DNA of 64,000 nt from contig JBLDXI010000007.1 in NCBI GenBank assembly GCA_047495785.1, positions 992,001 through 1,056,000 of the forward strand, written 5' to 3'. Both the position numbers and the translations under genes were made by a program. Under the pieces are notes generated by a model. It saw only the letters and a list, made by a program, of their open reading frames with translations, was not told the DNA's origin and ran no database searches. Position 1 is the stretch's first letter. The number at the start of each line of letters is the position of its first letter. Below, piece by piece: positions 5,788 to 55,017 of the stretch. Source of the stretch: Lepidodermella squamata (taxonomy: Eukaryota; Animalia; Gastrotricha).

Positions 5788-8104
5788 GAATCGGTGTTAC
5801 TTCATACAGGGTATTTCAAACAGTGATAATTTCATACAGTGATAATTTCATACATTTTTACATTAAATCGTGACTATTTCATACAGTGTCAATCCGGACA
5901 ATGATTTTTCGAAAATATCAGTGGAAATCGTGATTATTTCGTACAAAACAAGGATTATTGATTTTAACTCATGAAATCGTGATAATTTCATACCGAAAAG
6001 GCGGGAGATGTAAATGAAACGCGTGTTAAACGAGCTATAAAGCGGCTCAGGAACCATAATCCAGCTTAATACCTCTTAATTGCTACTTACTCGCTACCAT
6101 GCTTTTCTCAATCTTACGGCATTTACTGTCTTTGTTTATCGTATGCGACGTATGCGGTAAGGATTGCCCCACTGAGCGCGGCTTGAAGATTCACAAGACG
6201 AAGATGCATCCAGGTAAATAGCCGGCCCAATGAGTAAAATTTGTAGCTAATAAGTCGCTGTATAGTAGGAAATGCCACACCGGCGTCTACATCTTCTACG
6301 CCGGCAATGAGCCGCCAAACTTCAGTTGCAATGGAGTTCGAGGACTCTATTCCCATGGCCTCATCCTTAGTCTCTTCATTCTCACAGAACGATGTCACCT
6401 TCAACATGAACAACTCGTTCATGCCAAGCGTCTCGTCTACTCCTGCCCGCCTCGCCGCCCCTGATCAAACCATGTTCCAGCCTATGTTTCAACAGTTCGC
6501 TCAGTTCATGAGATGGATGCAGCCAACTGCGGCTATGCAAGCCGGCCTGAGCTATGTCGTTATGTACTGGATAAAATCGGCGATCAGAACAGAAAAAGGC
6601 AAGTCTGTTCACGATGTATACAACGACAAGGTCGGGAAGATGTTGGACTTTGGCGAAGATCATGGTTTAGAACGGTCGAAACTAGTCACTGCTATTCCTT
6701 GCTACGAGAATTGCAAGCGGACGCTTTACCAGCACTTCGATCGCTGTCAACCGAAGAAGCCGAAAACCGTCGCCAAATGGTTCGATCAGCTTAGCTCAGG
6801 AGCCGAGAAGGTCAACCAGTATCGCTTCAACAGCCGCAACCAGCTCTTCCTTCGCCATTTCGAGATCGTTCGGAATATCAAGGTTCCCGGAGCATTCGCT
6901 GTTTACGCGACCGATGCTGATTTGATTCGGATGGCTCAGTCAACTAGGACGTTCGTAGATGGCACCTTCAAATGCGTGCCAATTATCTTTTACCAACTAC
7001 TCGTATTCTTGACTCTGTTGAAGGACAAATTTGCGGTTCCAGCGTGCTACGTCCTCATGACGAACAAGTCTCAAGAATTGTACGTCAAGGTCTTCCAGTA
7101 CCTCAAAGGCGAGATGCTCAATCTAGTTCCATCAATCACGCAACCGCTAACAACTTGCGACTATGAACTTGGCATGATGAATGCCTTGGCTCTGGTTTTC
7201 CTCTGCGACATAGCAGGGTGTCATTTTCATTACTGCCAAGCCGTTTTGAAATGGGTGCATGAGAACGGTCTATGGACCGATTATCTTCTGGTGGAAGGCG
7301 AAATTCATCGCATCGTTCGCCGTATAATGGCCATTCCTCTGCTGCCTATGGATCACATGAGACCCGCTTTTGATTTAATCTGGTTTGGCGCCCAACCCCT
7401 TATCGACCAATCCGAAAATTTGAAGAAATTTTTCGAGTACATCGATTCGTATTGGTTTAAAGTTGTAACCGAGGAGAGATTTTGTGTTTATCGAAAGGAA
7501 TTTCGCACTAACAACTTTGCAGAAGGCAACAACAACAAGATTAACACGAAGGTTGGAGTGAGTCACCCTAATGTCTGGCGCTTTTCGAATTCTATGCTCG
7601 AGCTAGAAAACGATTCTCGAGTTGTTATCGACCAAATCACCGCAAACACCTACAAGCCGGCTAGCTCCGGAATCAAGCTTTATGCAAAAATATCGAACTT
7701 GATCAAGCTGCGCTGGGACGAGTTCGATCAGAACAAGCTTACTCCAATTGAGTTCTTGGATGCGGTTTCCGATGCGCTTTCTCAACTCAAGGTGAAGAAG
7801 CCAAAGGCGAAAGAAGACTTTCGCGAACTGGCCCCTTTGGACTTTGTTGATCCTGAGGGTGAAAGTGAAGATGATAATAATGGTGATAAAGATGATGATT
7901 AACGGTTAAATCTGTTTTCGGGTTGTAGAGAAAATAAAGTATGAAATTATCACGATTTTCGTTGGTATTTTTTTCGTATGAGAATTATCACGAAAAAATC
8001 AGAAAAATGTCATGAAAATATCACGGAAATAATGTACGAGTTACTACTGGTTTTGTATGAAATTATCACTGTATGAAGTACCCTGCATGAACTAACACTT
8101 TTCC
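5788..8104 (+). mobile_element. Mutator-like (MULE) DNA transposon, apparently full length
   Basis: Imperfect TIRs (GAATCGGTGTTACTTCATACAGGGTA / reverse complement GGAAAAGTGTTAGTTCATGCAGGGTA), subterminal GTGATAATTTCATAC repeats, perfect 8-bp TSD TTAGTGAC at 5780-5787 and 8105-8112. Confidence 0.9.
6307..7902 (+). CDS. MULE transposase
   Basis: FVDGTFKCVP..FYQL, TCDYELGMMNAL, GCHFHYCQAV (CxxH), RTNNFAEGNN: intact DDE motifs; start codon uncertain. Confidence 0.9.
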   Translation: MSRQTSVAMEFEDSIPMASSLVSSFSQNDVTFNMNNSFMPSVSSTPARLAAPDQTMFQPMFQQFAQFMRWMQPTAAMQAGLSYVVMYWIKSAIRTEKGKSVHDVYNDKVGKMLDFGEDHGLERSKLVTAIPCYENCKRTLYQHFDRCQPKKPKTVAKWFDQLSSGAEKVNQYRFNSRNQLFLRHFEIVRNIKVPGAFAVYATDADLIRMAQSTRTFVDGTFKCVPIIFYQLLVFLTLLKDKFAVPACYVLMTNKSQELYVKVFQYLKGEMLNLVPSITQPLTTCDYELGMMNALALVFLCDIAGCHFHYCQAVLKWVHENGLWTDYLLVEGEIHRIVRRIMAIPLLPMDHMRPAFDLIWFGAQPLIDQSENLKKFFEYIDSYWFKVVTEERFCVYRKEFRTNNFAEGNNNKINTKVGVSHPNVWRFSNSMLELENDSRVVIDQITANTYKPASSGIKLYAKISNLIKLRWDEFDQNKLTPIEFLDAVSDALSQLKVKKPKAKEDFRELAPLDFVDPEGESEDDNNGDKDDD

Positions 8105-12497: not shown

Positions 12498-15400
12498 TCA
12501 TTGGATATGAAAGAGCAGGTCATCGAGGTCTTTGTAGAGCAGGAAATCGGAAAGACTGGTCGGAAGGTTCAGCCGTTTGATAGCCGCATGCCGCGCCTTG
12601 AGGCCACGCGGCAATCGGCGCAAAATCGACGCGCGACACTGCGCCATCAACGAGCGGGGGTAAAACGCTGTGAAAAAGGCCGCATAATCGAAAACAATCG
12701 CCGGCACTTCGGCACTCGTCGTCGTCGTTTCAACAACAACAGCAGCTGCCGGTAAAACGGCGGCACCGTTCAACCGGCGAGGGCGCAGTTTTTCGGCCGT
12801 GTCCTGTAGCGAGGACACATTAAGGTGGCACGACCGCGACCGTGCTTCGATGACTAACCGCGCCACGACTTCGTTCTTCTGAACAAACCTCAAACCATCG
12901 GCGGCGTCGAACCGAGCCCCGTCGACGCTGATCGGGTTGAAATCGAGCAGATCTGGTATTGCGATCGCACCGGCCCGAAGTAGTGGCAGAACGGCATTAC
13001 TTAGAATGGGCATCAACCGATTTTGCGCGAAAGCGGCGTCGTAGAACGTTGCCATGAGCATGGACTCGCCGTCGGGGGGTTCGGCTTCGAAAAACGAACC
13101 AGGCAACGACTCCACGACGCTGACAGCTTCGTTCGCGTCGAAGATGGCGAGGAATGAAAGAACTTGGTAGGATTTGAGAAGTTCGAAGTTGAACGAGGCG
13201 TAGCAGTTCTCGGCACCGTAGTGGCTTATCAACTGCTTGTAGATGGCGATTAGCGACCGCGCCGCCGCTTCAGCCCCAGGCCGCCGCTCTGTGAGATCTG
13301 TAAAACATGGGGAAAAGTGGTTCAGCATATATATATATATATATATGTTAAAAAGTTAATGTCCCTGATAAGCTCGCTCACCAAAGGGCGGAATTGGAGC
13401 GTTCATTGCGCTGTAATAGCTAACCTGTTACCCGCAGAACGTTACACATGGCCGAGTTCACAAAACGTTGGTTAAAGATTTTTATCTCAAGAAAATGGGT
13501 CCAAGGTTCATTCGAAAGAAATTATCGGATTTAGGCTTGTTTTGTAGAATTTCTGGAAAATGAAGGGGACCTTGTAAAATTAATAAAAAGATGCAGGTCG
13601 TTTCACGCATTATGCCCCGGGAATTTACCTGGAATTTTGGAGCTCACCTTGAATTCCGGGACTTGGAATATCAGGTGATGTTATAGGATGTTTTTGTAGT
13701 TTCGGCGGAACTTCGGCCACTCCAGAAGCCGCTTGATCAAAATTTTCATTTGCCATTCTAAGCTTTTACATCCCCAGGCTATCTAACGGTACCCTACTCA
13801 TGTGGTCTTTAACGCACCACCTTTTTTTAAGATTTTTAAAGCCAAAATCACCCTATTTGACGGTACTTCCAGAAAATAGAAAACGAGAACAGCGTAAATA
13901 CTCGGAAACTCAAGTTGGCAAAGAAAAGACCCCAGTGGAGTCCAAATGGTTGGAGTGACAGTTGCAAAGCCCAAGGATAGACCAAACTGGATTTGTACGA
14001 TTCATATCAATAATGTACAGTTCTAGATCTCTATTTCCAGCGGAACTTCAATGACTGCTCTACGGAAGACGTGGAATCGAATTGGAAATTATTCACCAGT
14101 TATTAGCTACCCAACGGTATCCTACTCCTGGGGTCTTTTTCTTGCCACCTTAAATTTATGATGAGTACAAAACGCCATTTCGCTGTAGCACGGCGGCAGC
14201 GATGTTATCAGGTCAGTTTAAATAACAGAATATCTTTCAGCGGAATCGAATTTGCCTGCTACGGAACCTAATTTCTGATGAGCAAAAGGTCGCTTTTCGA
14301 ATATTTCCATGAAATTAAGGCAATGTATAAATTCTTTAATAAAAAAGCGTCTTAAACAGAATTTTACGCTTAATTTAATGAAGATATATTCCAAATTATT
14401 TTGATAAATAATGGCATTCTTGAAAGTTTCGAAAAGGCTCATTGAAAGTTCCAAAATTTGGTTCCGCTAAAAGTAAGACCCTTTAAATAATTATTAAAAT
14501 GTACCGCCAATAAAATATAAAAAAGTATGGTGAAATGCGAACCACTTGCACAGACCCTTAAGAAGTTGACGCATAAACACAAATATTTTGCTGACCGATA
14601 TGTAATTAGGCGTGTAAAAACTGTTCTCCCAATTTATATTGATCGTGTACGCGGGTCGTGATGCGCAGCATCCCAAATTTAGCAAATCTTTTGCATCTCG
14701 CAGCTCGTACCAAACTCGCGCGATAATTCGCACGTGCTGAAGAGGCCATTGGGGTTCAATGTGGGTTCAATTAAAAGAGGCACAAATTTTGCTGAATGGC
14801 AACATTGAGAAAGGAAAATTTGACCCAGGCTAATAAATAAATAGCGAATATACCGTGCTTCGAATTGAGTTAAAAATAAACTAGTTTGCCTGTAAAAGTA
14901 GCCGAGAATCCGCGGAAAAGTGACATCAGCGGCCGAGTCGGGTCTCCGCTTTTCGATCGGCTCAACAACGTAGGAATAGCGGCTTCAAAGTGCCAAGAAA
15001 TAGCGGCGCATAGCAGTGACATAGCTATACACGGCGGCGTTTTAAGATGACGGTTCAACGACAACGCCCCGGTCAACATATCAATATTCCTCGACCCAAC
15101 TGCACACCATAGTAGTAGCTCAAGATTCGGCGTGAATTGCTGCTGAAACGCGAGTTGCTGCCTTTCGAGGAAAATTGCAAACATGTCCCGGTAGACGGCC
15201 TCGGAAGGCTCGAGAGGTTGCTGGTCTTCACCGTCGTGATAATGCGGCATCGTCGCATTTTTTGCCAGCCAGATGTAAGAATCGCCATGCAGACCGCCGT
15301 CGATCAACTCGACACGTGCTGACGGTTCGATGAGACCGAGGTTGAGATTCTTCTCGAGATTGAATGATGAATCGAAGCGGCGTTCGGCTTTTCTCGCCGC

Positions 15401-18676: not shown

Positions 18677-20029
18677 TTAAATATTGAGCAGAACGTCGAA
18701 TTCGCGGAAATGAAGAAAATCGGTTAAACATTGCGGCAGATCCAGTTTTTCAATAGCCTGCTGTCTTGGCTTCGAGCCAACAGGTAAACAGCGCAAAATC
18801 GCCGTCCGACAGGCTAATTGAAGTCGGCGGGGAAATTGCTGCTTAGCAAACGCCAAAAATCGTTGCATATCACCGTTTACTGACCGCGAATCCAACTCAG
18901 CCCTTGCGATATTCAAAGTCATGGCGCCTACATTAATTCGGCCTGATTGACGGGCTTCGATTATCAGCTCGCTGAGCACACAGGGTCGGTTCCATAGGCA
19001 ACTCAACAGAGCTGTTTCGTCGTCGAGAAAGCAGCCGTAGGCGTCGAAAATTAACGAAGCGTCTTGTTCAAGGGGATCGGGTTCGAATTTGGACCCAGCT
19101 CGAAGCATTGGCAATAGGGCGAATTTGATGATTCTAGCGGCTCCTGATAGAATTTTCTCCCTATCTTCCAGCACCATAACACCGGATGAGGCCAGTAAAT
19201 GGTGAATAGCTCCGATTGGAGACAGCGAAATTTCTTGCCTAGGTGCCGTGAAAAAGTCTTCCCAAGCTCTCGATTTAGCGACTACGACGTGTTTCTGTAG
19301 ATTCGAAACAGTTAAGGCGGATTCAATTAATTCTCGAGCAGGTTCAACAGCGCCGCGTAGTGCCAAAAGCCCGGCATTTTGAACGGGGAAACTCGCGAAA
19401 ATTTCGTCGCAATCATCCGAATTTTCTAGGAGAATTCGAAGAATCTGCGAATGGGGCCGGAGCAGCTTCGGGTGCAGGGTGTCCCAGCCTACAACGTGGT
19501 TCGCCATGTAGTCCCAAAACGCGCGGCAAAACATGATGCCCGTCGCAACTGGGGCTCCAAGTCGAAGTAGCATCGCCACGGCGTCGATATTAAAATGCTG
19601 CATCGCGTGGACGAGCAGTGAACCCAATAAACACCTCGGAATTTCAACGTCATTATCCGCCAAAATTTCCTCCAATTTTGCCAGGTCGGAAATCGTGAGA
19701 AAACCAAGAGCTTTTAGGTGAGATTCAATCACCGATTTTCCTTTGATTTTTCCGATAATTTTTCGAATTAATAAATCACGAGGGATAGAAGTTGAAGTTG
19801 AGTCATCGTTGTGGAAGACGATTTCAAAGCCGTGGTGAAGGTCGGGATACACGAGTAGGTAGTCGGATGGCCAGATAAGGTTTGACCCGCCGGTCATAAA
19901 AACGAGATTTGCGGTTGAAATTGAACTTTTCAGGGCTTCTCGAGTCATTTCAAAGAGCCTTCGCAGGTAATCGGGCCTGGCGATTTCGCATTGCAGGTGG
20001 CATTTATGATCGAGCTGGGAAATTTTCAT
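18677..20029 (-). CDS. Ankyrin-like/SOCS-box protein, paralog B
   Basis: HKCHLQCEIARPDY, VYPDLHHG, AVAMLLRLGA, ILRILLE, C-terminal FPRRLQLACRTAILRCL..LDLPQCLTDFLHF. Confidence 0.85.
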   Translation of the reverse strand: MKISQLDHKCHLQCEIARPDYLRRLFEMTREALKSSISTANLVFMTGGSNLIWPSDYLLVYPDLHHGFEIVFHNDDSTSTSIPRDLLIRKIIGKIKGKSVIESHLKALGFLTISDLAKLEEILADNDVEIPRCLLGSLLVHAMQHFNIDAVAMLLRLGAPVATGIMFCRAFWDYMANHVVGWDTLHPKLLRPHSQILRILLENSDDCDEIFASFPVQNAGLLALRGAVEPARELIESALTVSNLQKHVVVAKSRAWEDFFTAPRQEISLSPIGAIHHLLASSGVMVLEDREKILSGAARIIKFALLPMLRAGSKFEPDPLEQDASLIFDAYGCFLDDETALLSCLWNRPCVLSELIIEARQSGRINVGAMTLNIARAELDSRSVNGDMQRFLAFAKQQFPRRLQLACRTAILRCLPVGSKPRQQAIEKLDLPQCLTDFLHFREFDVLLNI

Positions 20030-20370
20030 CTCGATTAACACCTAAAAATGAAGAAACAATTTGAAAATTTAAATTTAAATTTCAAGCAAAAATGAGTGCA
20101 AATTGAAGTGAAGGGAAAATGCGAAATAATTTAGTCCACTTGATGTCACGTGTGGATCGCTCATTGTTAAGCATGGCAACAGGTGGCAAGCATTTACTTC
20201 GAGTGACCGAAATGAGGTCAAATATTTTACTAATAATGCGGCGTCACACCTTGGCGCGACAAATGATAAAACTCAGCGCATTGCTCCAAACCCCAAAAAT
20301 TTTATTATTAGCGTTGAAAAATCACAAAAAATCACGAAGATGACAGAAATAAAATGAGAATGAATGAAAA

Positions 20371-21795
20371 TCAAGATGACGTATCATCGATGAGAACAAA
20401 TCTGAGCACTTCCTTGCATAGGTTGAATTCTTTGAAATTCAAAAAATTTGAAACACAACGAGGTAAATCGAGACTTTTAATCGCCTTGCATCGAGCTTCC
20501 AGGCCAACAGGAAGGCAGTTCAACACGGCTTGTCGCGATATGGCCTGTAAAGATCGTGGGAATTGTTTGGTAACGTGGCTAGCGAAGAGTTGCAAATCGT
20601 TGGCATCGCGCCAATTCGGTAAACCTGCCGCGAGCTCGGCTAAACTCTGCGTTAATTTCTGCGGATTAAACGACGTTTTCCGCCGCGATTCGAGTAAAAT
20701 TTCCGTCAACACCCACGGCCGACGCCATAGCTCGGTCATCACAGCTCCGGGCTGGTCCAACAGGTAGCCGAAATTGTCAAAAATTAACGCCGGATTTTCA
20801 AGAGGGTCCGGGTAAAAAACTGCACCCGATCGCAAAAGCGGTAGAATAGCGATGAGAAACATTTTCGCAGCTTCTTCTATCAACAACTGCCGCTCGAAAT
20901 GGCTAGCCTTGTAAACGGCTAGATTATAAGCAATTGCTAGGCACGTGCTAGCAGGTAGGTCGTTTCGGCTAGGCAACCAACGAAATGGCCGGGCTAAGGT
21001 TTGGGTAAGACCTTTTTCCGGGGTAGCCCTGATCAGCATCAAAGCCGCCTCAAAAGCTCCACATTGCACCAAATGACCGACCATGTGAACTGGGATAACG
21101 CTAGTAACCGGTGATTTATACGTCAAATTTGCATTGTAGCCAATCAGCCGGCGTAGAATGTTAGTTTGAGCCTCGCGTTGCTCGAAGGTCGCCCCGTCTA
21201 GTCGCGATAAAACGTGAGAAATCGGCCGATCTGATGAGTCATGAACGTTCACGCCGTAGTCGGTATTTGCGCCGAAATCAAGTAAAACCGCGACGCCTAT
21301 ATCGAAATCGTCATTAATGGCCTGCCGTAGTAACGACGCCAGAAGACATTTCGGGGTTGAAGCCTGATTTTTTCGCAATAATTCAGCGAGAATTCCGTCG
21401 TTTTTCGCGTAAACAGCGCAATATAATTGCATTTGAATTCGGCATAATTCGCATTTCCGGCATTTTCCAAGTTTTTCGAATTCGGCTGAATTTTCGGGCG
21501 ATATAAGGCAGATTTCGCCGAGAATTTTAACCGCCGGCGTTCCCCAGTCGTGGCGATGCATAACGATTTCGCGGCCGTCGTGTAGATCAGGGTCGACTGT
21601 CGGCGTATCGACCCAGGTTGTGAACGGCTTGAATTGGTGGGGCAGAACGTAAATTCGCTGATTTTCATGTATGCGTTTCGTAGCGATGCTTATTAGCCGT
21701 CGGGCGTTCTTCATGAAGCGCCGGTAGTAGCCGGGCTTTGACAGCTCGCAGGTATTGCGGCACAACATCTCAGCATGCCGATTTTTCACCGGCAT
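20371..21795 (-). CDS. Ankyrin-like/SOCS-box protein, paralog C
   Basis: HAEMLCRNTCELSKPGY, VDPDLHDG, VAVLLDFGANTD, ILRRLIGYNAN, C-terminal FPRSLQAISRQAVLNCL..LDLPRCVSNFLNF. Confidence 0.88.
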   Translation of the reverse strand: MPVKNRHAEMLCRNTCELSKPGYYRRFMKNARRLISIATKRIHENQRIYVLPHQFKPFTTWVDTPTVDPDLHDGREIVMHRHDWGTPAVKILGEICLISPENSAEFEKLGKCRKCELCRIQMQLYCAVYAKNDGILAELLRKNQASTPKCLLASLLRQAINDDFDIGVAVLLDFGANTDYGVNVHDSSDRPISHVLSRLDGATFEQREAQTNILRRLIGYNANLTYKSPVTSVIPVHMVGHLVQCGAFEAALMLIRATPEKGLTQTLARPFRWLPSRNDLPASTCLAIAYNLAVYKASHFERQLLIEEAAKMFLIAILPLLRSGAVFYPDPLENPALIFDNFGYLLDQPGAVMTELWRRPWVLTEILLESRRKTSFNPQKLTQSLAELAAGLPNWRDANDLQLFASHVTKQFPRSLQAISRQAVLNCLPVGLEARCKAIKSLDLPRCVSNFLNFKEFNLCKEVLRFVLIDDTSS

Positions 21796-22465
21796 TTTTC
21801 GGCGGAGTTTATTCGGGTAAATAAATTTACTGGTAAATAATTTGACCTAAAATAATGTGGAACGTTTAAGTGGAACAAATATGTCCATTTTTCAAAAAAT
21901 GAAGGATTCAACGCGGCGCTGATGGAAGTGCCAATTTCAGTGAACCAGCAAAAAGGCAAAAAGGTGTGTACTAAATCAATCAAAACCCAGCTGGCGTGAC
22001 CACGTAAGCGCTTAATTCTTGTACAGATGGCCACATTGAGAAAGATCAGGACCTTATAAACAAAATTGAATTCAACGCCAAACAGGATAACAGGTTAAGT
22101 CGCAATGTCCGCTAACAAGTGAAAAGTTAATATTGGCGAATATTAACCAGAGTAGATGAAAGAAAATAAATCCATACCTACATTTCGCTATGCTGTATAA
22201 CTAGTTTTTCTTTTATTTCGATTTAGGTACAGTGGATTCTGAAACACCGATTTTCCAGATGCAAACGGCATTTTCTAGATGAGACTATATCGTTGAGCGG
22301 CTGACAATATTAGGTTCTGATCTGGAGAAATTCACAGAAATTAAAAATGGAGTTGGCCCCAACGATCTCGAACTATCAGAATGGCAATATAGACAGGGCG
22401 GTTTTTGAACGCCAAATTTTGTTCAAGCCGTTGACCAGAAAAATGAGCCCATTCTTTGTTGTTTT

Positions 22466-22625
22466 ACGGGTGTGGCGCGAACGCCGGTACCCAAGTGAAA
22501 TATTTTGCACCCGACTCCGCCGATGAGGCAGAGCGCAGGGGTCAGCGGACCGCAGTGCAATGGCCCGCCTCGCCCTGGGGCGACCGACTTGCTGAGCTCG
22601 GTTCATCCCAGTGCCAGGTAAGTTT
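22466..22625 (-). ncRNA. U1 snRNA-like gene (variant), copy 1
   Basis: AAACUUACCUGGCAC 5' end, CCCAGGGCGAGGC, U1A loop AUUGCAC, CUGACCCCUGCG, terminal GCG-UUCG-CGC stem-loop; 160 nt. Confidence 0.9.
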
Positions 22626-22654
22626 AGTGGCCATAGGTCTACGCGATCGACCCC

Positions 22655-22674
22655 ACTCAGCAGTCGGACCATAA
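22655..22674 (-). promoter_or_regulatory. Candidate snRNA proximal sequence element
   Basis: TTATGGTCCGACTGCTGAGT at about -49..-30, conserved with copy 2; resembles the Drosophila PSEA core CCCAACTG. Confidence 0.35.
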
Positions 22675-22742
22675 AAGGGTACTGAAGTCATTTGGTTATT
22701 CCTCTTTTCTTCATAAATTCTGATTAAAAATATTGCGACAGT

Positions 22743-22814
22743 TAGCAGAGCGTAGTTTCGATCTACAGACCTCTGGGTTATGGGCCCAGCGCGCTTCCAC
22801 TGCGCCACTCTGCT
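22743..22814 (-). tRNA. tRNA-iMet(CAU)
   Basis: AGCAGAGTGGCGCAGTGGAAGCGCGCTGGGCCCATAACCCAGAGG..GATCGAAAC..; A1:U72 pair, ATCG T-loop, three G-C anticodon-stem pairs typical of the eukaryotic initiator. Confidence 0.97.
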
Positions 22815-22883
22815 TGTCTGAAAAGTGATTTAGCCATTCGATCATTGTTTTTAAAGTTTCAAAGAATTCAAATGGAAAAATGA

Positions 22884-22965
22884 TGGCAGCGGTGGGGTTC
22901 GAACCCACGCCTCCGAAGAGACTAGAGCCTAAATCTAGCGCCTTAGACCACTCGGCCACGCTACC
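22884..22965 (-). tRNA. tRNA-Leu(UAG)
   Basis: 82-nt cloverleaf GGTAGCGTGGCCGAGTGGTCTAAGGCGCTAGATTTAGGCTCTAG.., long variable arm, GGTTCGAACCC, T5 terminator. Confidence 0.97.
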
Positions 22966-28447: not shown

Positions 28448-31400
28448 CCCATATAATCCCAGTATGCATTATAATGCGTTTGTATATTTATAGAGCCACA
28501 AACTGCCAGAGCATTGCAAAACGCATGATTTAGGTGTCGATTGATAGCTGAAAAACTACTTCATAAGTTTGGGCACTTTTTATTAGGCATTGCGTATTTT
28601 ATCAAGAGCTATAGATATTAGAAAATCGATAATCGCCAAAAATCGATTTGTGATCTTCGATTTATCGGAATCGATATTTACATGCAAGCAATCCTGGTAA
28701 AACATTAGGATATCTTACAGCATACGATTTCAGGATTATTTTCATATAAAAAACATTATTGTATGAGGAATGGCTAATTAATGGCGATATCGAAATCGAT
28801 CATGCAGTAAACTGCACACTGGGTACTAAAGGGAGCGTAAGACAAAGTAAGCAAATCAACAAGATCAAACAAGAAAAAAAATCAGAATCGGTCAAAATCA
28901 TGGCGTTTAAGGAATTAAATGAAATTCTGAGAAGTGCGGAATGCAAAGGCCTACATCGCACGTCGTGCAATGGTATGCTGAACGGCGATTGCAACCTGGA
29001 AAAGCGCAATTTCTCATTCTATGACCTTCGTTGAACGCAACCAGGTGGCGCTTCTCGGCGAGTCGAACTTCGTTTGGCACTCTAAACTTATTAGACCGAT
29101 GAACAACAACTTGCAAAGCATTCCGTTCAGGTGGCGTTCCGTATCTGCCAAGATAGAAATTGACCAGACGTCTCCGGAAGTCGAGCAAGGGCGCAGAGCT
29201 GGCGTCTTTCCGGGTCCGTGATCGATAGAGGATCCAGGCGTTTTGAATAGCTACTTCCAATAGCCAAGTGAATAGAGCCCAGTACCATTTTTTTGACCTG
29301 ATGCTGGTCCTGTAATAAAAAAAGCAATGACGGAATAATTATAAGCCCGTTAATTTTACCTGTAGTAAGATATATTCTGATCCATTCTGTCTGTTCCACC
29401 CATTGCTTCGTTGTATTTGCTTATGGCGAACGGCTGTAAAATATTAATACGTCTGCCGTGCTCTTGGCTCCAACGCTTCACAGATTGAAAGGGCTTTGTA
29501 CCATATTTGCTGCTGCTAACAGTGACGACAGCGTTGTCCATCCACCGAATGAAGACAGTACCGGATTCGCGATGAACGCGGGAATCCATGGACCCTCGTG
29601 GCATTTTCTTCATTTCCGCCTTGGGCTTAAGGGGACAATTTGCTAGCATATTGTCTCTAATTGTGCCTGTGTGATGGCACCCACGAGCGTAAAGCTCCTG
29701 CGTTAGAGCAAGACGAGTAAAGTAGTTATCAGTGTAAATATGATAAAAGTTAGGCCGAGCAGCCAGAAGATTAGCGACAAGATCTAGTACAACATTACCG
29801 CCAAGACCGAACTTTTTGAGGGCAACAGGGTCCGACCGTGACCAAAGGCCCTGATAGAAGTCAAAATTGATGAGATACCCGTTTGGGGCATTCAAACAGA
29901 ATGCTTTATAGCCAAAACGTATTGGTTTGCCTCGTATAAATTGTTTACATGGATGTCGCCCGAAATACGGAGCCATCGATTCGTCGACGTCCAAGTTTTC
30001 GAATCGCTGCCATTCGAATTGAGCAAGAAATCGATTGTTCAACAAATCCATAAGTTCCCTTATCTTGCCATAACTGAAAAATATTTCCCGAAAATTTATA
30101 GAAAAATTCTCAATTATTATTTATTCGAGAATTACCGATCATTTTGAGGTAGGTTGTCGTTGTCAGCAAAGTGTAAATTCGCCATGATTTCGTCAAACCG
30201 GTTCCGGCGCATAGCCTGAGCAACAGCGTTATTTCTAAGGTCACTGTCGATCGACCAATAATTGTGGCGCCGAGGGAGGACAGAATAGCCGGAGAGCATC
30301 AGTATAGCAAAGAAGCATCGAAGTTCAGCAGCATCAGTTGTAAATGTTAGACCTTTGCTCCGAGCGTAGTCGTTGGAATACTTGACCACCATCGCCATCA
30401 CTTTATCGTCCCAAAACAGTTCGAACAACTTGACTTCGAGTGGTACATCTGACGGCTGATCATCTTCATCAGGATCATCACCAGGGTCACCACCATCTGG
30501 ATTTCGCCGAAAATCAGCTAGAGAGGAGCAGGTTGGCTTGTCGCCGATCGAGAACGAGGCTGCTGTTGGCTTTGATTTGTTCGGAACAGCCTTGCGCCGC
30601 TTCGTGGGCACACAGTTTTCATCGTCTTCGCTGTCAGAATCGCCGTGTCCGCTTTCGCTAGTGTCATCATCGCGATGTGTAGTTGAATAACGTGCGCAAG
30701 TTCTTCGAGGGCGAGTTTCTTGGATAGGGGTACTTTCAGGTTGGCGCTCGGTAAACGGCGTCCTTTCGGCTTGCGTAGCAACGGCGGCTCTTTCTTCATC
30801 GGTAAGGGACGAAAGCACTTTCCGGCGTCGTTGGCGAAGACCGGAATTAGTTACATTCGGGCCTAATATTGGAGACGGCAAATTGAAAGGCAATCATTTC
30901 AAAAAAGACTCACCTATTTGCTGGATCGATGGGGTCTTGTTACTGCTCGGATTGTTGCCAGGTAGCTGTTCAGGGAGCGAATCAATATCGGGTTCAATGC
31001 GTTCGTTGTTAACGAATACGACCTCAGCTGGAGCGAGAAGAAGTCGGGGAGGTAAATTGTCAATAACCCCGCCACCGTCTTCTTCGCCTGAGTCAACATC
31101 GCTTGTAGAGCCGTTGCCTGGCGGCAAGACGTAAATGCTTTCAACCCGTTCATCGCCTTCGCCCGGTATGTCTTCATCGAGCATATCCAAGACCTCTTGG
31201 AGAGTGAACTTCTTTACCGCCGTAATGGCGACAATTAAAGACCATAAGACTAACAAGGTTTTAAGATTCATTTATTACAATAGTATGAATTTTAAGTTAC
31301 TCTGAACGAATAGTGACATGCTATTGACCTTGGTGCCGACATTGGGTGTCAAGAAATGTTGACACTGTGGCACCATGTGCTCTGAAGCACGTGGCAAACA

Positions 31401-39399: not shown

Positions 39400-40425
39400 T
39401 TTATTTTACTACCACCGCCTGTTACGGCGCTCTCGGCGCGATTACATAGCCTCATAGACTTAGAAATTTATGATGCAATCAACAATGTAAAAAGGCGATA
39501 TAAAATGAACGGTAGAAAAGATAATATGCCGTTTCTCTAAAAAGAGTGCTGGTTATAAAACGACTTGTAGCCAGTCCCGTGGGTCGTGTGAGAGGCTCAG
39601 CTGGCTAGGTTTTGAAACTTCACGTAAATGCCAAGCTGGGCACTTATCGGCAAGTACTTTGCGAGCGTCTTCTGACGTTGGGCGGATACCGCAGACGTAG
39701 TTGATGTAGTCCGCCGTATCTAGACCTGCTGCTAAGCAGCGTTCGCCATAGCGTTTGAAGGCACCAAGGAAGACATCCTCAATGGAGTCGACTCCGGCGT
39801 AAGCGATGACGTCTATTACTTCCGTTTCGAAGGGCAGATCAAACAAGGCTCGAAGGCAGTGGGCTTGGATTTCCAACAGTTTTCCAACCGAGGAGGGCGC
39901 AAGGCAACGAAGGGCAGGGGCTCCATAGGCAACCAAGGACTCCAGGACTGTTTTATAAAAGAGCACACAAAGGTTTTTAGGCAAAACATGCCGCTTGGCC
40001 AAGGCGTAGAGGGCGCCAAGGCGAGGCTTCAGTTTTGAGGCAATTATTTCAAGATGGTAATTCCAACTTAGCTGGGGTGTGAGATAAATCCCGAGGTAGC
40101 GTGCGCGGTTGACCTGAGGCAGGGGCTGGCCATATAGCTCAAAGCGTACTTCAGGAGGCGAGTTGCCATATCTACCGAAGACGATCACTTCACACTTCCC
40201 CGGGCTTAAGCGAAGCCGCCATTTGTTGCACCACACTTCGATTGAGCGTAGGCGCTTTCTTAGCCTCGCGACGCTGGCTGCAATCGAGTAGCCGAAGGTC
40301 CAGATTAGGGAGTCGTCAGCAAATGTGCCTTTTGCGACAGATCTGGTGGCGTCTTGCGGCGAGGAACCTTTTGGCTGAATGTCCATGGCATAAAAGATAA
40401 AAAGTAGAGGTGCTTTGTAGTTCAA
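39400..40425 (-). mobile_element. 5'-truncated LINE reverse transcriptase fragment
   Basis: FADD, WCNKWRLRLSPGKC, RYLGIYL..LSWNYH, LFYKTV..YG; A-rich 3' end near 39400. Confidence 0.85.
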
Positions 40426-52917: not shown

Positions 52918-52999
52918 GGTAGTGTGGCCGAGTGGTCTAAGGCGCTAGATTTAGGCTCTAGTCTCTTCGGAGGCGTGGGTTCGAACCCCACCGCTGCCA
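52918..52999 (+). tRNA. tRNA-Leu(UAG)
   Basis: 82-nt cloverleaf, one substitution versus the copy at 22884-22965; T5 terminator. Confidence 0.97.
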
Positions 53000-53068
53000 T
53001 CATTTTTCCCATTTAAATTCTTAGAAATTTCGCATTCAATATCAAGTGATTGGATTACTCTTCAGACA

Positions 53069-53140
53069 AGCAGAGTGGCGCAGTGGAAGCGCGCTGGGCC
53101 CATAACCCAGAGGTCTGTAGATCGAAACTACGCTCTGCTA
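53069..53140 (+). tRNA. tRNA-iMet(CAU)
   Basis: Identical to the copy at 22743-22814. Confidence 0.97.
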
Positions 53141-53257: not shown

Positions 53258-53417
53258 AAACTTACCTGGCACTGGGATGCACCGAGCTCAGCAAGTCGGT
53301 CGCCCCAGGGCGAGGCGGGCCATTGCACTGCGGTCCGCTGACCCCTGCGCTCTGCCTCATCGGTGGAGTCGGGTGCAAAATATTTCACTTGGGTACCGGC
53401 GTTCGCGCCACACCCGT
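53258..53417 (+). ncRNA. U1 snRNA-like gene (variant), copy 2
   Basis: Same U1 hallmarks as copy 1; two substitutions. Confidence 0.9.
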
Positions 53418-53643
53418 AAAATCGAAAACAATGAAACTGTTCCTTATTCATTGGGCTGAACAATCATCGAGTGATTTCACTATATTATGGTCCCAAACTT
53501 GTACCCTTTAATTCAACTGCTACTCATTGATGAAACTGATGAAGTAAATGAAATCGGAGGTACAAGCTACTGCGTAAATCTTGTCCGAACCGGAAAATTT
53601 TATTTTAAAACTTCAACAAGGAGATTAAAAGTAATCGAAATCA

Positions 53644-55017
53644 TCACTTGTTGCCGCAGATGGCAAGATCACTAAATTCGAGATATTTCAAAATCGAACT
53701 CGGCAATAATTCACCCAGTCCGTGCAATCGAAGTGCATCTTCCCGTGATTTCAGCCCAACGGGAAGGCAATTGACGATCGCTCGGCGGCAAATCGATTGC
53801 AAAGTGCGCGGGAAGGCCTTTCGTAACGGCTCAGTAATTCCACTGGTCAGCGATTCAGGAAACCCCGACAACGCATTATTCATCCTGCCGATATCAAATC
53901 GATTAAACATCCGAGCTTCGACGATAAATTTCATCAACACCTCAATCTGCGGCTTTACATTCACATTGTCCCGCAATAAATTGATTAACAAATTGAAAAA
54001 CGCAGCATCCTCTAATAAATCCGGCTCCAGCCGAGCGCCAAGACGAATAAGGGGTAGAACGCCGTTTTCAAGCGCCCGTTTGAACGCAAAGGTCTCCGGG
54101 GCGTATCGATACGCGATTCGAGACGCGTGGTAAAGCGACATTGCCAACGGCGAATATCGAGCCGTAAATCTATTCGTATTGCCTGGCTTCCCCAAATTAT
54201 TCACCGCATCGATTGGGGTGTTGGAAATGATAAGATTCGCAGCTTCCGGGCTTGAAACAGCTATTCGACTGACTTGATGTAGCGGAATGTTAAGGCCGGT
54301 ATCAATCGGCTCTGTCAAATCAGCGCCGAACTTGATCAAAAGGCGCAAAATTTCGGTAGCTTTCGCCGTTAACGGATTAACAGGCTGCTCCTCAAATTGC
54401 TGAAAATCGTGGATTGACAGCATTAGGGTGACTACAGTTAGTGGCTTGCTTAGATTAGTCCGATTAGGCGACGCGCCGAATTCAAGGAGAGCTTCAACGC
54501 CTTCGTCGAAGTAACTTTCAATGCAGCGATGCATTAAAGAGGCTAATAGGCAATTAGGTAAGTTGGTTTGCTTTCGTAAAATCGATCTCATCGTTTCGGC
54601 ATCTAACGACAGTCGAGCTATATGGAGGACCATCTCAATCTGAGGCAGAGGAATCGCATTGCCGTTTTTCACTTCTTCGTCGATTTGGCGTAGTAGGATC
54701 ATTTTAAGCCGATCACAGGCGTTTGTCATTGATTCATCTCGCCGCCATTCGATGAAGAGATGGAAGTCGTGGAGGTCAGAATCGACGAGTTCGAGCAAAT
54801 CGGCCGAACTCAGTGTTCGAGCAGTCCCAGGCCGGCCCGGCTGTTAATTAATCTCTGTTAATTCAAAGATTAAATTTCGGTTGGAAAATTTTACCTGAAT
54901 AAGGCAACGACTAGCGGTTTCTGACAATAATTGAGCCGTGCTGAGTAAATTATTCCGATAATTTGGCTCAGTTATCGGACATCGCCCATTGCACGCGAAA
55001 TTTGAGTGGAGTTCCAT
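53644..55017 (-). CDS. Ankyrin-like/SOCS-box protein, paralog D, 2 exons
   Basis: HSNFACNGRCPITEPNY, CAG|GTAAAA..AACAG intron, VDSDLHD, VEALLEFGASPN, ILRLLIKFGAD, FPRTLQSICRRAIVNCL..LLPSSILKYLEF. Confidence 0.88.

Follow-up and report, generated by a model that had tools for sequence, protein, structure and literature searches.

Two loci in the 64,000-nt stretch of Lepidodermella squamata DNA analysed here (the window) are real, well-conserved U1 spliceosomal RNA genes. Judged from the sequence, they encode a lineage-specific variant of this known family that is altered at two protein-binding sites, the U1-70K loop and the Sm site. We think it likely that both loci are the animal's standard U1 gene of the major spliceosome, modestly altered at these two docking sites. 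Few RNA-protein contacts of eukaryotes are as conserved as the U1-70K loop and the Sm site, and human U1 RNAs that are defective at either of the two are degraded.

Gene identity and architecture

Full-length matches to the Rfam U1 model (RF00003) were found at 22466-22625 on the minus strand (copy A, 102.1 bits) and at 53258-53417 on the plus strand (copy B, 102.3 bits). Both span model positions 1-166 with an E-value of about 1e-24; the gathering score of the model is 69.5 bits, and U1 was the winner of the clan competition. Each copy is 160 nt long, and 158 of the 160 nucleotides are identical between them. The MFE fold of the 160-nt RNA is that of a canonical U1, comprising helix H, stem-loops I-III, the four-way junction, an unpaired Sm linker, and stem-loop IV.

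The individual elements are located here in copy A, on the minus strand. The 5' arm AAACUUACCUG occupies U1 positions 1-11 by direct reading (22615-22625) and contains ACUUACCUG, the complement of the 5' splice site with which the arm would pair; it is single-stranded in the MFE fold. Loop II carries AUUGCAC (22555-22561), an exact match to the canonical U1A site, and helix H is GCAC/GUGC. Loop I, which is the U1-70K site by position, reads GCUCAGCAAG (22588-22597). The linker between helix H and stem-loop IV, AAAAUAUUUCACUU (22493-22506), is unpaired in the MFE fold, and the Infernal register places the proposed Sm nonamer AAUAUUUCA (22496-22504) within it. Stem-loop IV (22468-22492) has the apex GCGUUCGCGC and is canonical in both the RF00003 match and the fold. 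By its score, its 5' arm, its junction with stem-loop IV, and AUUGCAC, the RNA is an architectural member of RF00003. An initial annotation of this DNA had named the 5' arm, loop II, helix H, loop I, and the Sm linker, and all of these strings are present as quoted.

The likeness to canonical metazoan U1 (RF00003; human structures, PMC4383343) extends to the length class, the 5' arm, helix H, stem-loops I-IV, AUUGCAC, the apex of stem-loop IV, the position and spacing of the Sm site, and the loop I nucleotides G28, U30, C31, A32, A35, A36, and G37. The differences from human U1 are A29C, C33G, and G34C in loop I (human numbering) and the heptad AAUAUUU instead of AAUUUGU, which is followed by CA instead of GG.

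Scanning metagenomes with the pattern AAACTTACCTGGC, a gap, and CCATTGCAC returned 18 contigs (L001-L018), 16 of which hold a full U1 by Rfam. All 18 U1s compared have the same 5' arm, which the scan pattern itself demanded. In an alignment with 11 metagenome U1s, 19 of the 27 consensus pairs show compensatory changes, bearing out the helix compensation that the initial annotation had described. In helix H, for example, pair three occurs as UA/AU/GC and pair four as GC/CG/UG across the alignment. Stem-loop II was recovered poorly by the sequence-only alignment; it is paired in the Rfam match and in the MFE fold.

Loop I and the Sm site

The alterations of loop I and of the Sm site to which the initial annotation had drawn attention are real, but their extent was overstated: seven of the ten loop positions are kept, and the Sm heptad has a single change. 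Loop I reads G28 C29 U30 C31 A32 G33 C34 A35 A36 G37 in human numbering and, compared with GAUCA(N)GAAG, preserves the UCA core and the AAG stack. In the 2.5 Å structure of U1-70K with stem-loop I, C31 and A32 lie on phenylalanines of the RNP motifs, G28 is flipped onto Tyr112, U30 rests against Leu175, and A35, A36, and G37 form one continuous stack (PMC4383343). C33 and G34 form a stack flanked by Arg191 and Lys138, both of which bind phosphates of these two nucleotides, and no base-specific contact is described for C33 or G34; A29 and A36 form the trans Watson-Crick/Hoogsteen pair that closes the loop (PMC4383343). All bases that contact the RNP motifs of U1-70K, as well as G28, U30, and A35-G37, are retained in the U1 studied here.

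Variation among other U1s separates the three substitutions. In 16 environmental U1s, position 33 is C, A, U, or G, position 34 is G or C, position 35 is A or U, and position 37 is G or U, and two of the 16 carry the identical string CAGCAA. Since positions 33 and 34 vary in this way, C33G and G34C fall where change appears to be tolerated. Position 29 is A in all 16 comparison U1s, so that A29C occurs in none of them. When the hairpins are folded in isolation, the prediction for both copies is a CAGCA pentaloop with C29-G37 and U30-A36 paired and a G bulged out, whereas an open 10-nt loop is predicted for three canonical U1 hairpins; these predictions concern the free RNA, not the protein complex.

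We took the register and the pockets of the Sm heptad from solved structures (PMC4383343, PMC4756616). The heptad AAUAUUU matches the U4-type heptad AAUUUUU at six of seven positions, and the one U-to-A change falls at the position of the SmD3 pocket. Infernal aligned AAUAUUU to AAUUUgU of the model, with two G positions deleted. The nonamer is preceded by 2 nt and followed by 3 nt of linker, for which the Rfam consensus has 2 and 4. The literal consensus PuAU4-6(G/U)Pu is absent, and what stands at the right place, with the right spacing and single-stranded, is AAUAUUUCA. An alternative register, UAUUUCA, is less likely: it mismatches at three positions and is spaced less well, with 4 nt in front and 1 nt behind.

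Positions 8 and 9 of the nonamer are CA rather than GG. In all 16 comparison U1s, a U-run is followed by (U/C)UG, and the U1 of the window is without the G there. The nonamer's two final nucleotides are held loosely in the solved structures, and their removal spares in vitro assembly (PMC4383343, PMC4756616). There is also a precedent for a purine in the heptad: in human U1, the G is unable to enter SmD1 and sits outside the central hole (PMC4383343, PMC4756616). Recognition by Gemin5 is reported to need the second A and the first and third U (bioRxiv 10.1101/2023.08.19.553944), and these three critical bases are all kept in AAUAUUU.

Taken as an ordinary U1, the RNA would most likely still be assembled with U1-70K, U1A, and a normal Sm ring. 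Its unchanged ACUUACCUG arm would pair with 5' splice sites, and its four-way junction and stem-loop IV are normal in the fold. C33G and G34C fall at what the solved structure describes as stacking and phosphate contacts and not base-specific ones, A29C alters the non-Watson-Crick pair that closes the loop and may replace it with a C-G pair, and in the heptad, only the base that would be bound for the SmD3 pocket is changed, to a purine that may sit outside the pocket like the human U1 G at SmD1. Transcription is probably by RNA polymerase II from the conserved upstream block described below. The genes are presumably expressed; a weak hint comes from two 'metagenomic RNA-Seq' runs, in which 0.82 and 0.64 of the sampled U1 words occur, and one of these runs contains about 0.22 of the words of a 701-nt stretch, which is roughly the share of U1 alone.

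Genomic context and conservation between the copies

Each U1 gene is the last member of a cassette of three genes on the same strand, in the order tRNA-Leu (TAG), tRNA-Met (CAT), U1 (ARAGORN and Rfam). The two cassettes are inverted relative to each other and lie about 30 kb apart. Next to copy A, the tRNA-Met gene (22743-22814, minus strand) lies upstream of U1 across a spacer of 117 nt, and the tRNA-Leu gene (22884-22965, minus strand) lies a further 69 nt upstream of tRNA-Met; their twins are at 53069-53140 and 52918-52999 on the plus strand. The tRNA-Met has sequence features that we take to be those of a eukaryotic initiator. The spacers are 69 and 117 nt long in both cassettes (22743-22965 and 52918-53140), with 36% and 17% of positions substituted and zero indels, and this fixed spacing poses the question of whether transcription of U1 depends on how far away the tRNA genes lie.

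Two blocks upstream of U1 stand out. The proximal block, at -49 to -1 (22626-22674, minus strand), is identical at 45 of 49 positions between the copies and is a candidate core promoter. The distal block, at -78 to -60 (22685-22703, minus strand), shows no difference between the copies and may be a PSE (proximal sequence element), a component of snRNA promoters. Both blocks look like snRNA promoter elements, an assignment made from their position. Directly 3' of U1 (22446-22465 and 53418-53437), the copies have AAAA, an AAA about 4 nt further on, and AATG in common; 11 of these 20 nucleotides are identical before the flanks diverge, and the common letters may be a weak 3'-box-like processing signal. 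We rejected transcription of U1 by RNA polymerase III, or together with the tRNAs: tRNA-Met is followed by a T5 run, the region near -30 has no TATA-like element, and copy B is without a T-run after U1.

Identity between the cassettes is patchy. It is 158/160 in U1, 72/72 in tRNA-Met, and 81/82 in tRNA-Leu, compared with 97/117 in the spacer between tRNA-Met and U1 and 44/69 in the spacer between the two tRNA genes; it is about 46% in the first 100 nt past U1 and about 37% upstream of tRNA-Leu. The two differences within U1 are an A/C at position 23 (window position 22603), which is unpaired in stem-loop I, and a C/U at position 107 (window position 22519), which turns a G-C into a G-U pair in stem-loop III of the MFE fold and corresponds to a bulge column of the Rfam model. 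Both are structure-neutral under the fold and under the model.

The initial annotation had counted the same 2/160 differences in U1, including the G-C to G-U change in stem III, and 20/117 in the adjacent spacer, and had read them as constraint on the RNA. These counts are exact, and the excess in the spacer is significant (Fisher p = 1e-6), but the 117-nt spacer is itself not a neutral standard, as the blocks at -49 to -1 and -78 to -60 are conserved. The spacer between the tRNA genes has 25/69 differences (Fisher p = 6e-13 against U1). Because both spacers differ so much more than U1 does, we conclude that the U1 RNA is under strong constraint.

Other features of the window include four long ORFs that end in a SOCS box (Pfam PF07525), all on the minus strand (12498-13328, 18677-20041, 20371-21795, and 53644-54798), the last of which has a match just below the Pfam cut-off. 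They suggest that a SOCS-box family, which would be lineage-specific, has expanded locally; a word-based protein search gave no match for the 474-aa member. Transposon remnants at 6307-7902 (plus strand), 29356-30893 (minus strand), and 39553-40425 (minus strand) comprise an ORF for a MULE transposase, two ORFs that together make up a split piggyBac-type (DDE_Tnp_1_7) transposase, and a weak reverse-transcriptase fragment.

Alternative readings and environmental U1s

The pattern of conservation bears on whether the two copies are functional at all. They could be silent or decaying, alike through recent duplication or gene conversion and not through selection on the RNA, and their inverted arrangement 30 kb apart is a layout able to favour conversion. 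Yet the copies are nearly 100% identical across the three RNA genes, 64-83% across the spacers, and close to random past the 3' end of U1, and such patchiness is better accounted for by selection acting on each RNA gene than by one conversion tract or a recent duplication. Both differences within U1 also preserve the fold, and the promoter-like blocks are conserved, so that we give this reading hardly any credence. The same strong constraint counts against a specialised variant U1 that would act beside a canonical U1 gene located elsewhere, in the manner of human vU1. Variant U1 families are known from other animals (PMC8457000, PMC10870369). In the window, however, both U1 copies carry the variant form, and an Rfam rescan of the 64 kb up to an E-value of 0.5 found no canonical U1 (with a GAUCACGAAG loop and a AAUUUGUGG-type Sm site), no third U1, and no other snRNA. 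The human vU1 genes, paralogues of U1, are substituted at the sites for U1-70K, U1A, or Sm; they occur alongside a canonical U1 that predominates, and their RNAs are mostly culled by quality control (PMC12667742), whereas the variant described here appears to be the sole form and is strongly conserved. A specialised snRNP beside a canonical one, which the initial annotation had proposed, thus finds no support in the window, and we consider it improbable. Its other suggestion, a lineage in which the sequence of the U1 core has drifted or co-evolved, fits a window with two variant copies and no canonical one.

How far the core itself has changed is a separate matter. If this is the only U1 of the lineage and its core is really different, the reading of C29 and AAUAUUUCA would call for co-evolution of U1-70K or of the proteins at the SmD3 or SmD1/D2 positions, or for paralogues in their place. 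Several features speak for such a change and against a standard U1: by sequence, the RNA is an outlier at both sites, with neither A29C nor the heptad's U-to-A change occurring in any U1 of the comparison set of 16, and folding predicts that A29C closes the loop to a pentaloop, in contrast to canonical loops. Moreover, its nonamer is without G at positions 8 and 9, as is the U7 site, which recruits Lsm10/11; by analogy, the CA found there may matter, as CU at these positions in U7 helps to specify the Lsm10/11 ring. U7, with the Sm site AAUUUGUCUAG, is the known precedent for an alternative ring that is specified by sequence. The U1 of the window, however, is without the U7-specific CUAG, is 160 nt long where U7 is roughly 60 nt with a histone-pairing 5' end, and has the architecture of U1; membership in a U7-type snRNP was therefore rejected. 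Those nucleotides whose role is base-specific or critical have been kept, and the two nonamer bases that differ from GG are the loosely bound ones that are dispensable for in vitro assembly. On balance, a really changed core is possible but unlikely, and we assign a similarly small probability to its modelled form, a sole U1 with a C-G-closed pentaloop and a purine-interrupted Sm site without the 3' G. If true, it would need co-evolved U1-70K and Sm proteins (at the SmD3 or SmD1/D2 position) or an assembly that is independent of Gemin5.

If the sole U1 of this lineage carries both A29C and a purine in the heptad, it would be a natural experiment on how much change these contacts tolerate, and the genome would be a place to seek matched changes in U1-70K, SmD3, and Gemin5. 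If these proteins are canonical, the known sequence range of functional U1 would become wider and no new mechanism would be involved. A wider range would help the annotation of U1 genes and the judging of human U1 variants.

None of the metagenome U1s is a close relative of the U1 studied: the best has about 60% identity, and the flanks are unrelated. A scan of genome contigs for the 5' arm combined with the variant loop gave 31 matches, every one of which fell by chance in bacterial DNA and lacked a downstream U1, and by our own estimate about 35 chance matches were expected. A generic U1 pattern matched 13 times in viral contigs, and Rfam recognised none of these as U1. A string search for the variant loop and Sm sequences found neither in any paper of the literature collection that was searched.

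The environmental U1s that start with AAAC (nematode-type and other; L001-L018) have the AAACUUACCUGGC start in common with the U1 studied. Their overall identity to it is 50-60%, and they differ from it in that all keep A29 and a U-run/(U/C)UG Sm site. Two of them, L008 and L009, resemble it further in helix H, which is GCAC/GUGC (GCAU/GUGU in L009), and in the loop string CAGCAA. Both have the C33G/G34C swap in loop I (GAUCAGCAAG/U) together with a normal U-run Sm site, which means that this swap arose in at least one other lineage.

Many of the environmental U1s lie in dense clusters with other small RNA genes. L003, L004, and L013 carry 5S rRNA-U5-U1 clusters (the shorter L003 only U1-5S), L012 and L016 carry U5-U2-U1, and L005, L010, L017, and L018 carry U4-U2-U5-U1 repeats. 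These clusters are tandem snRNA arrays of eukaryotes.
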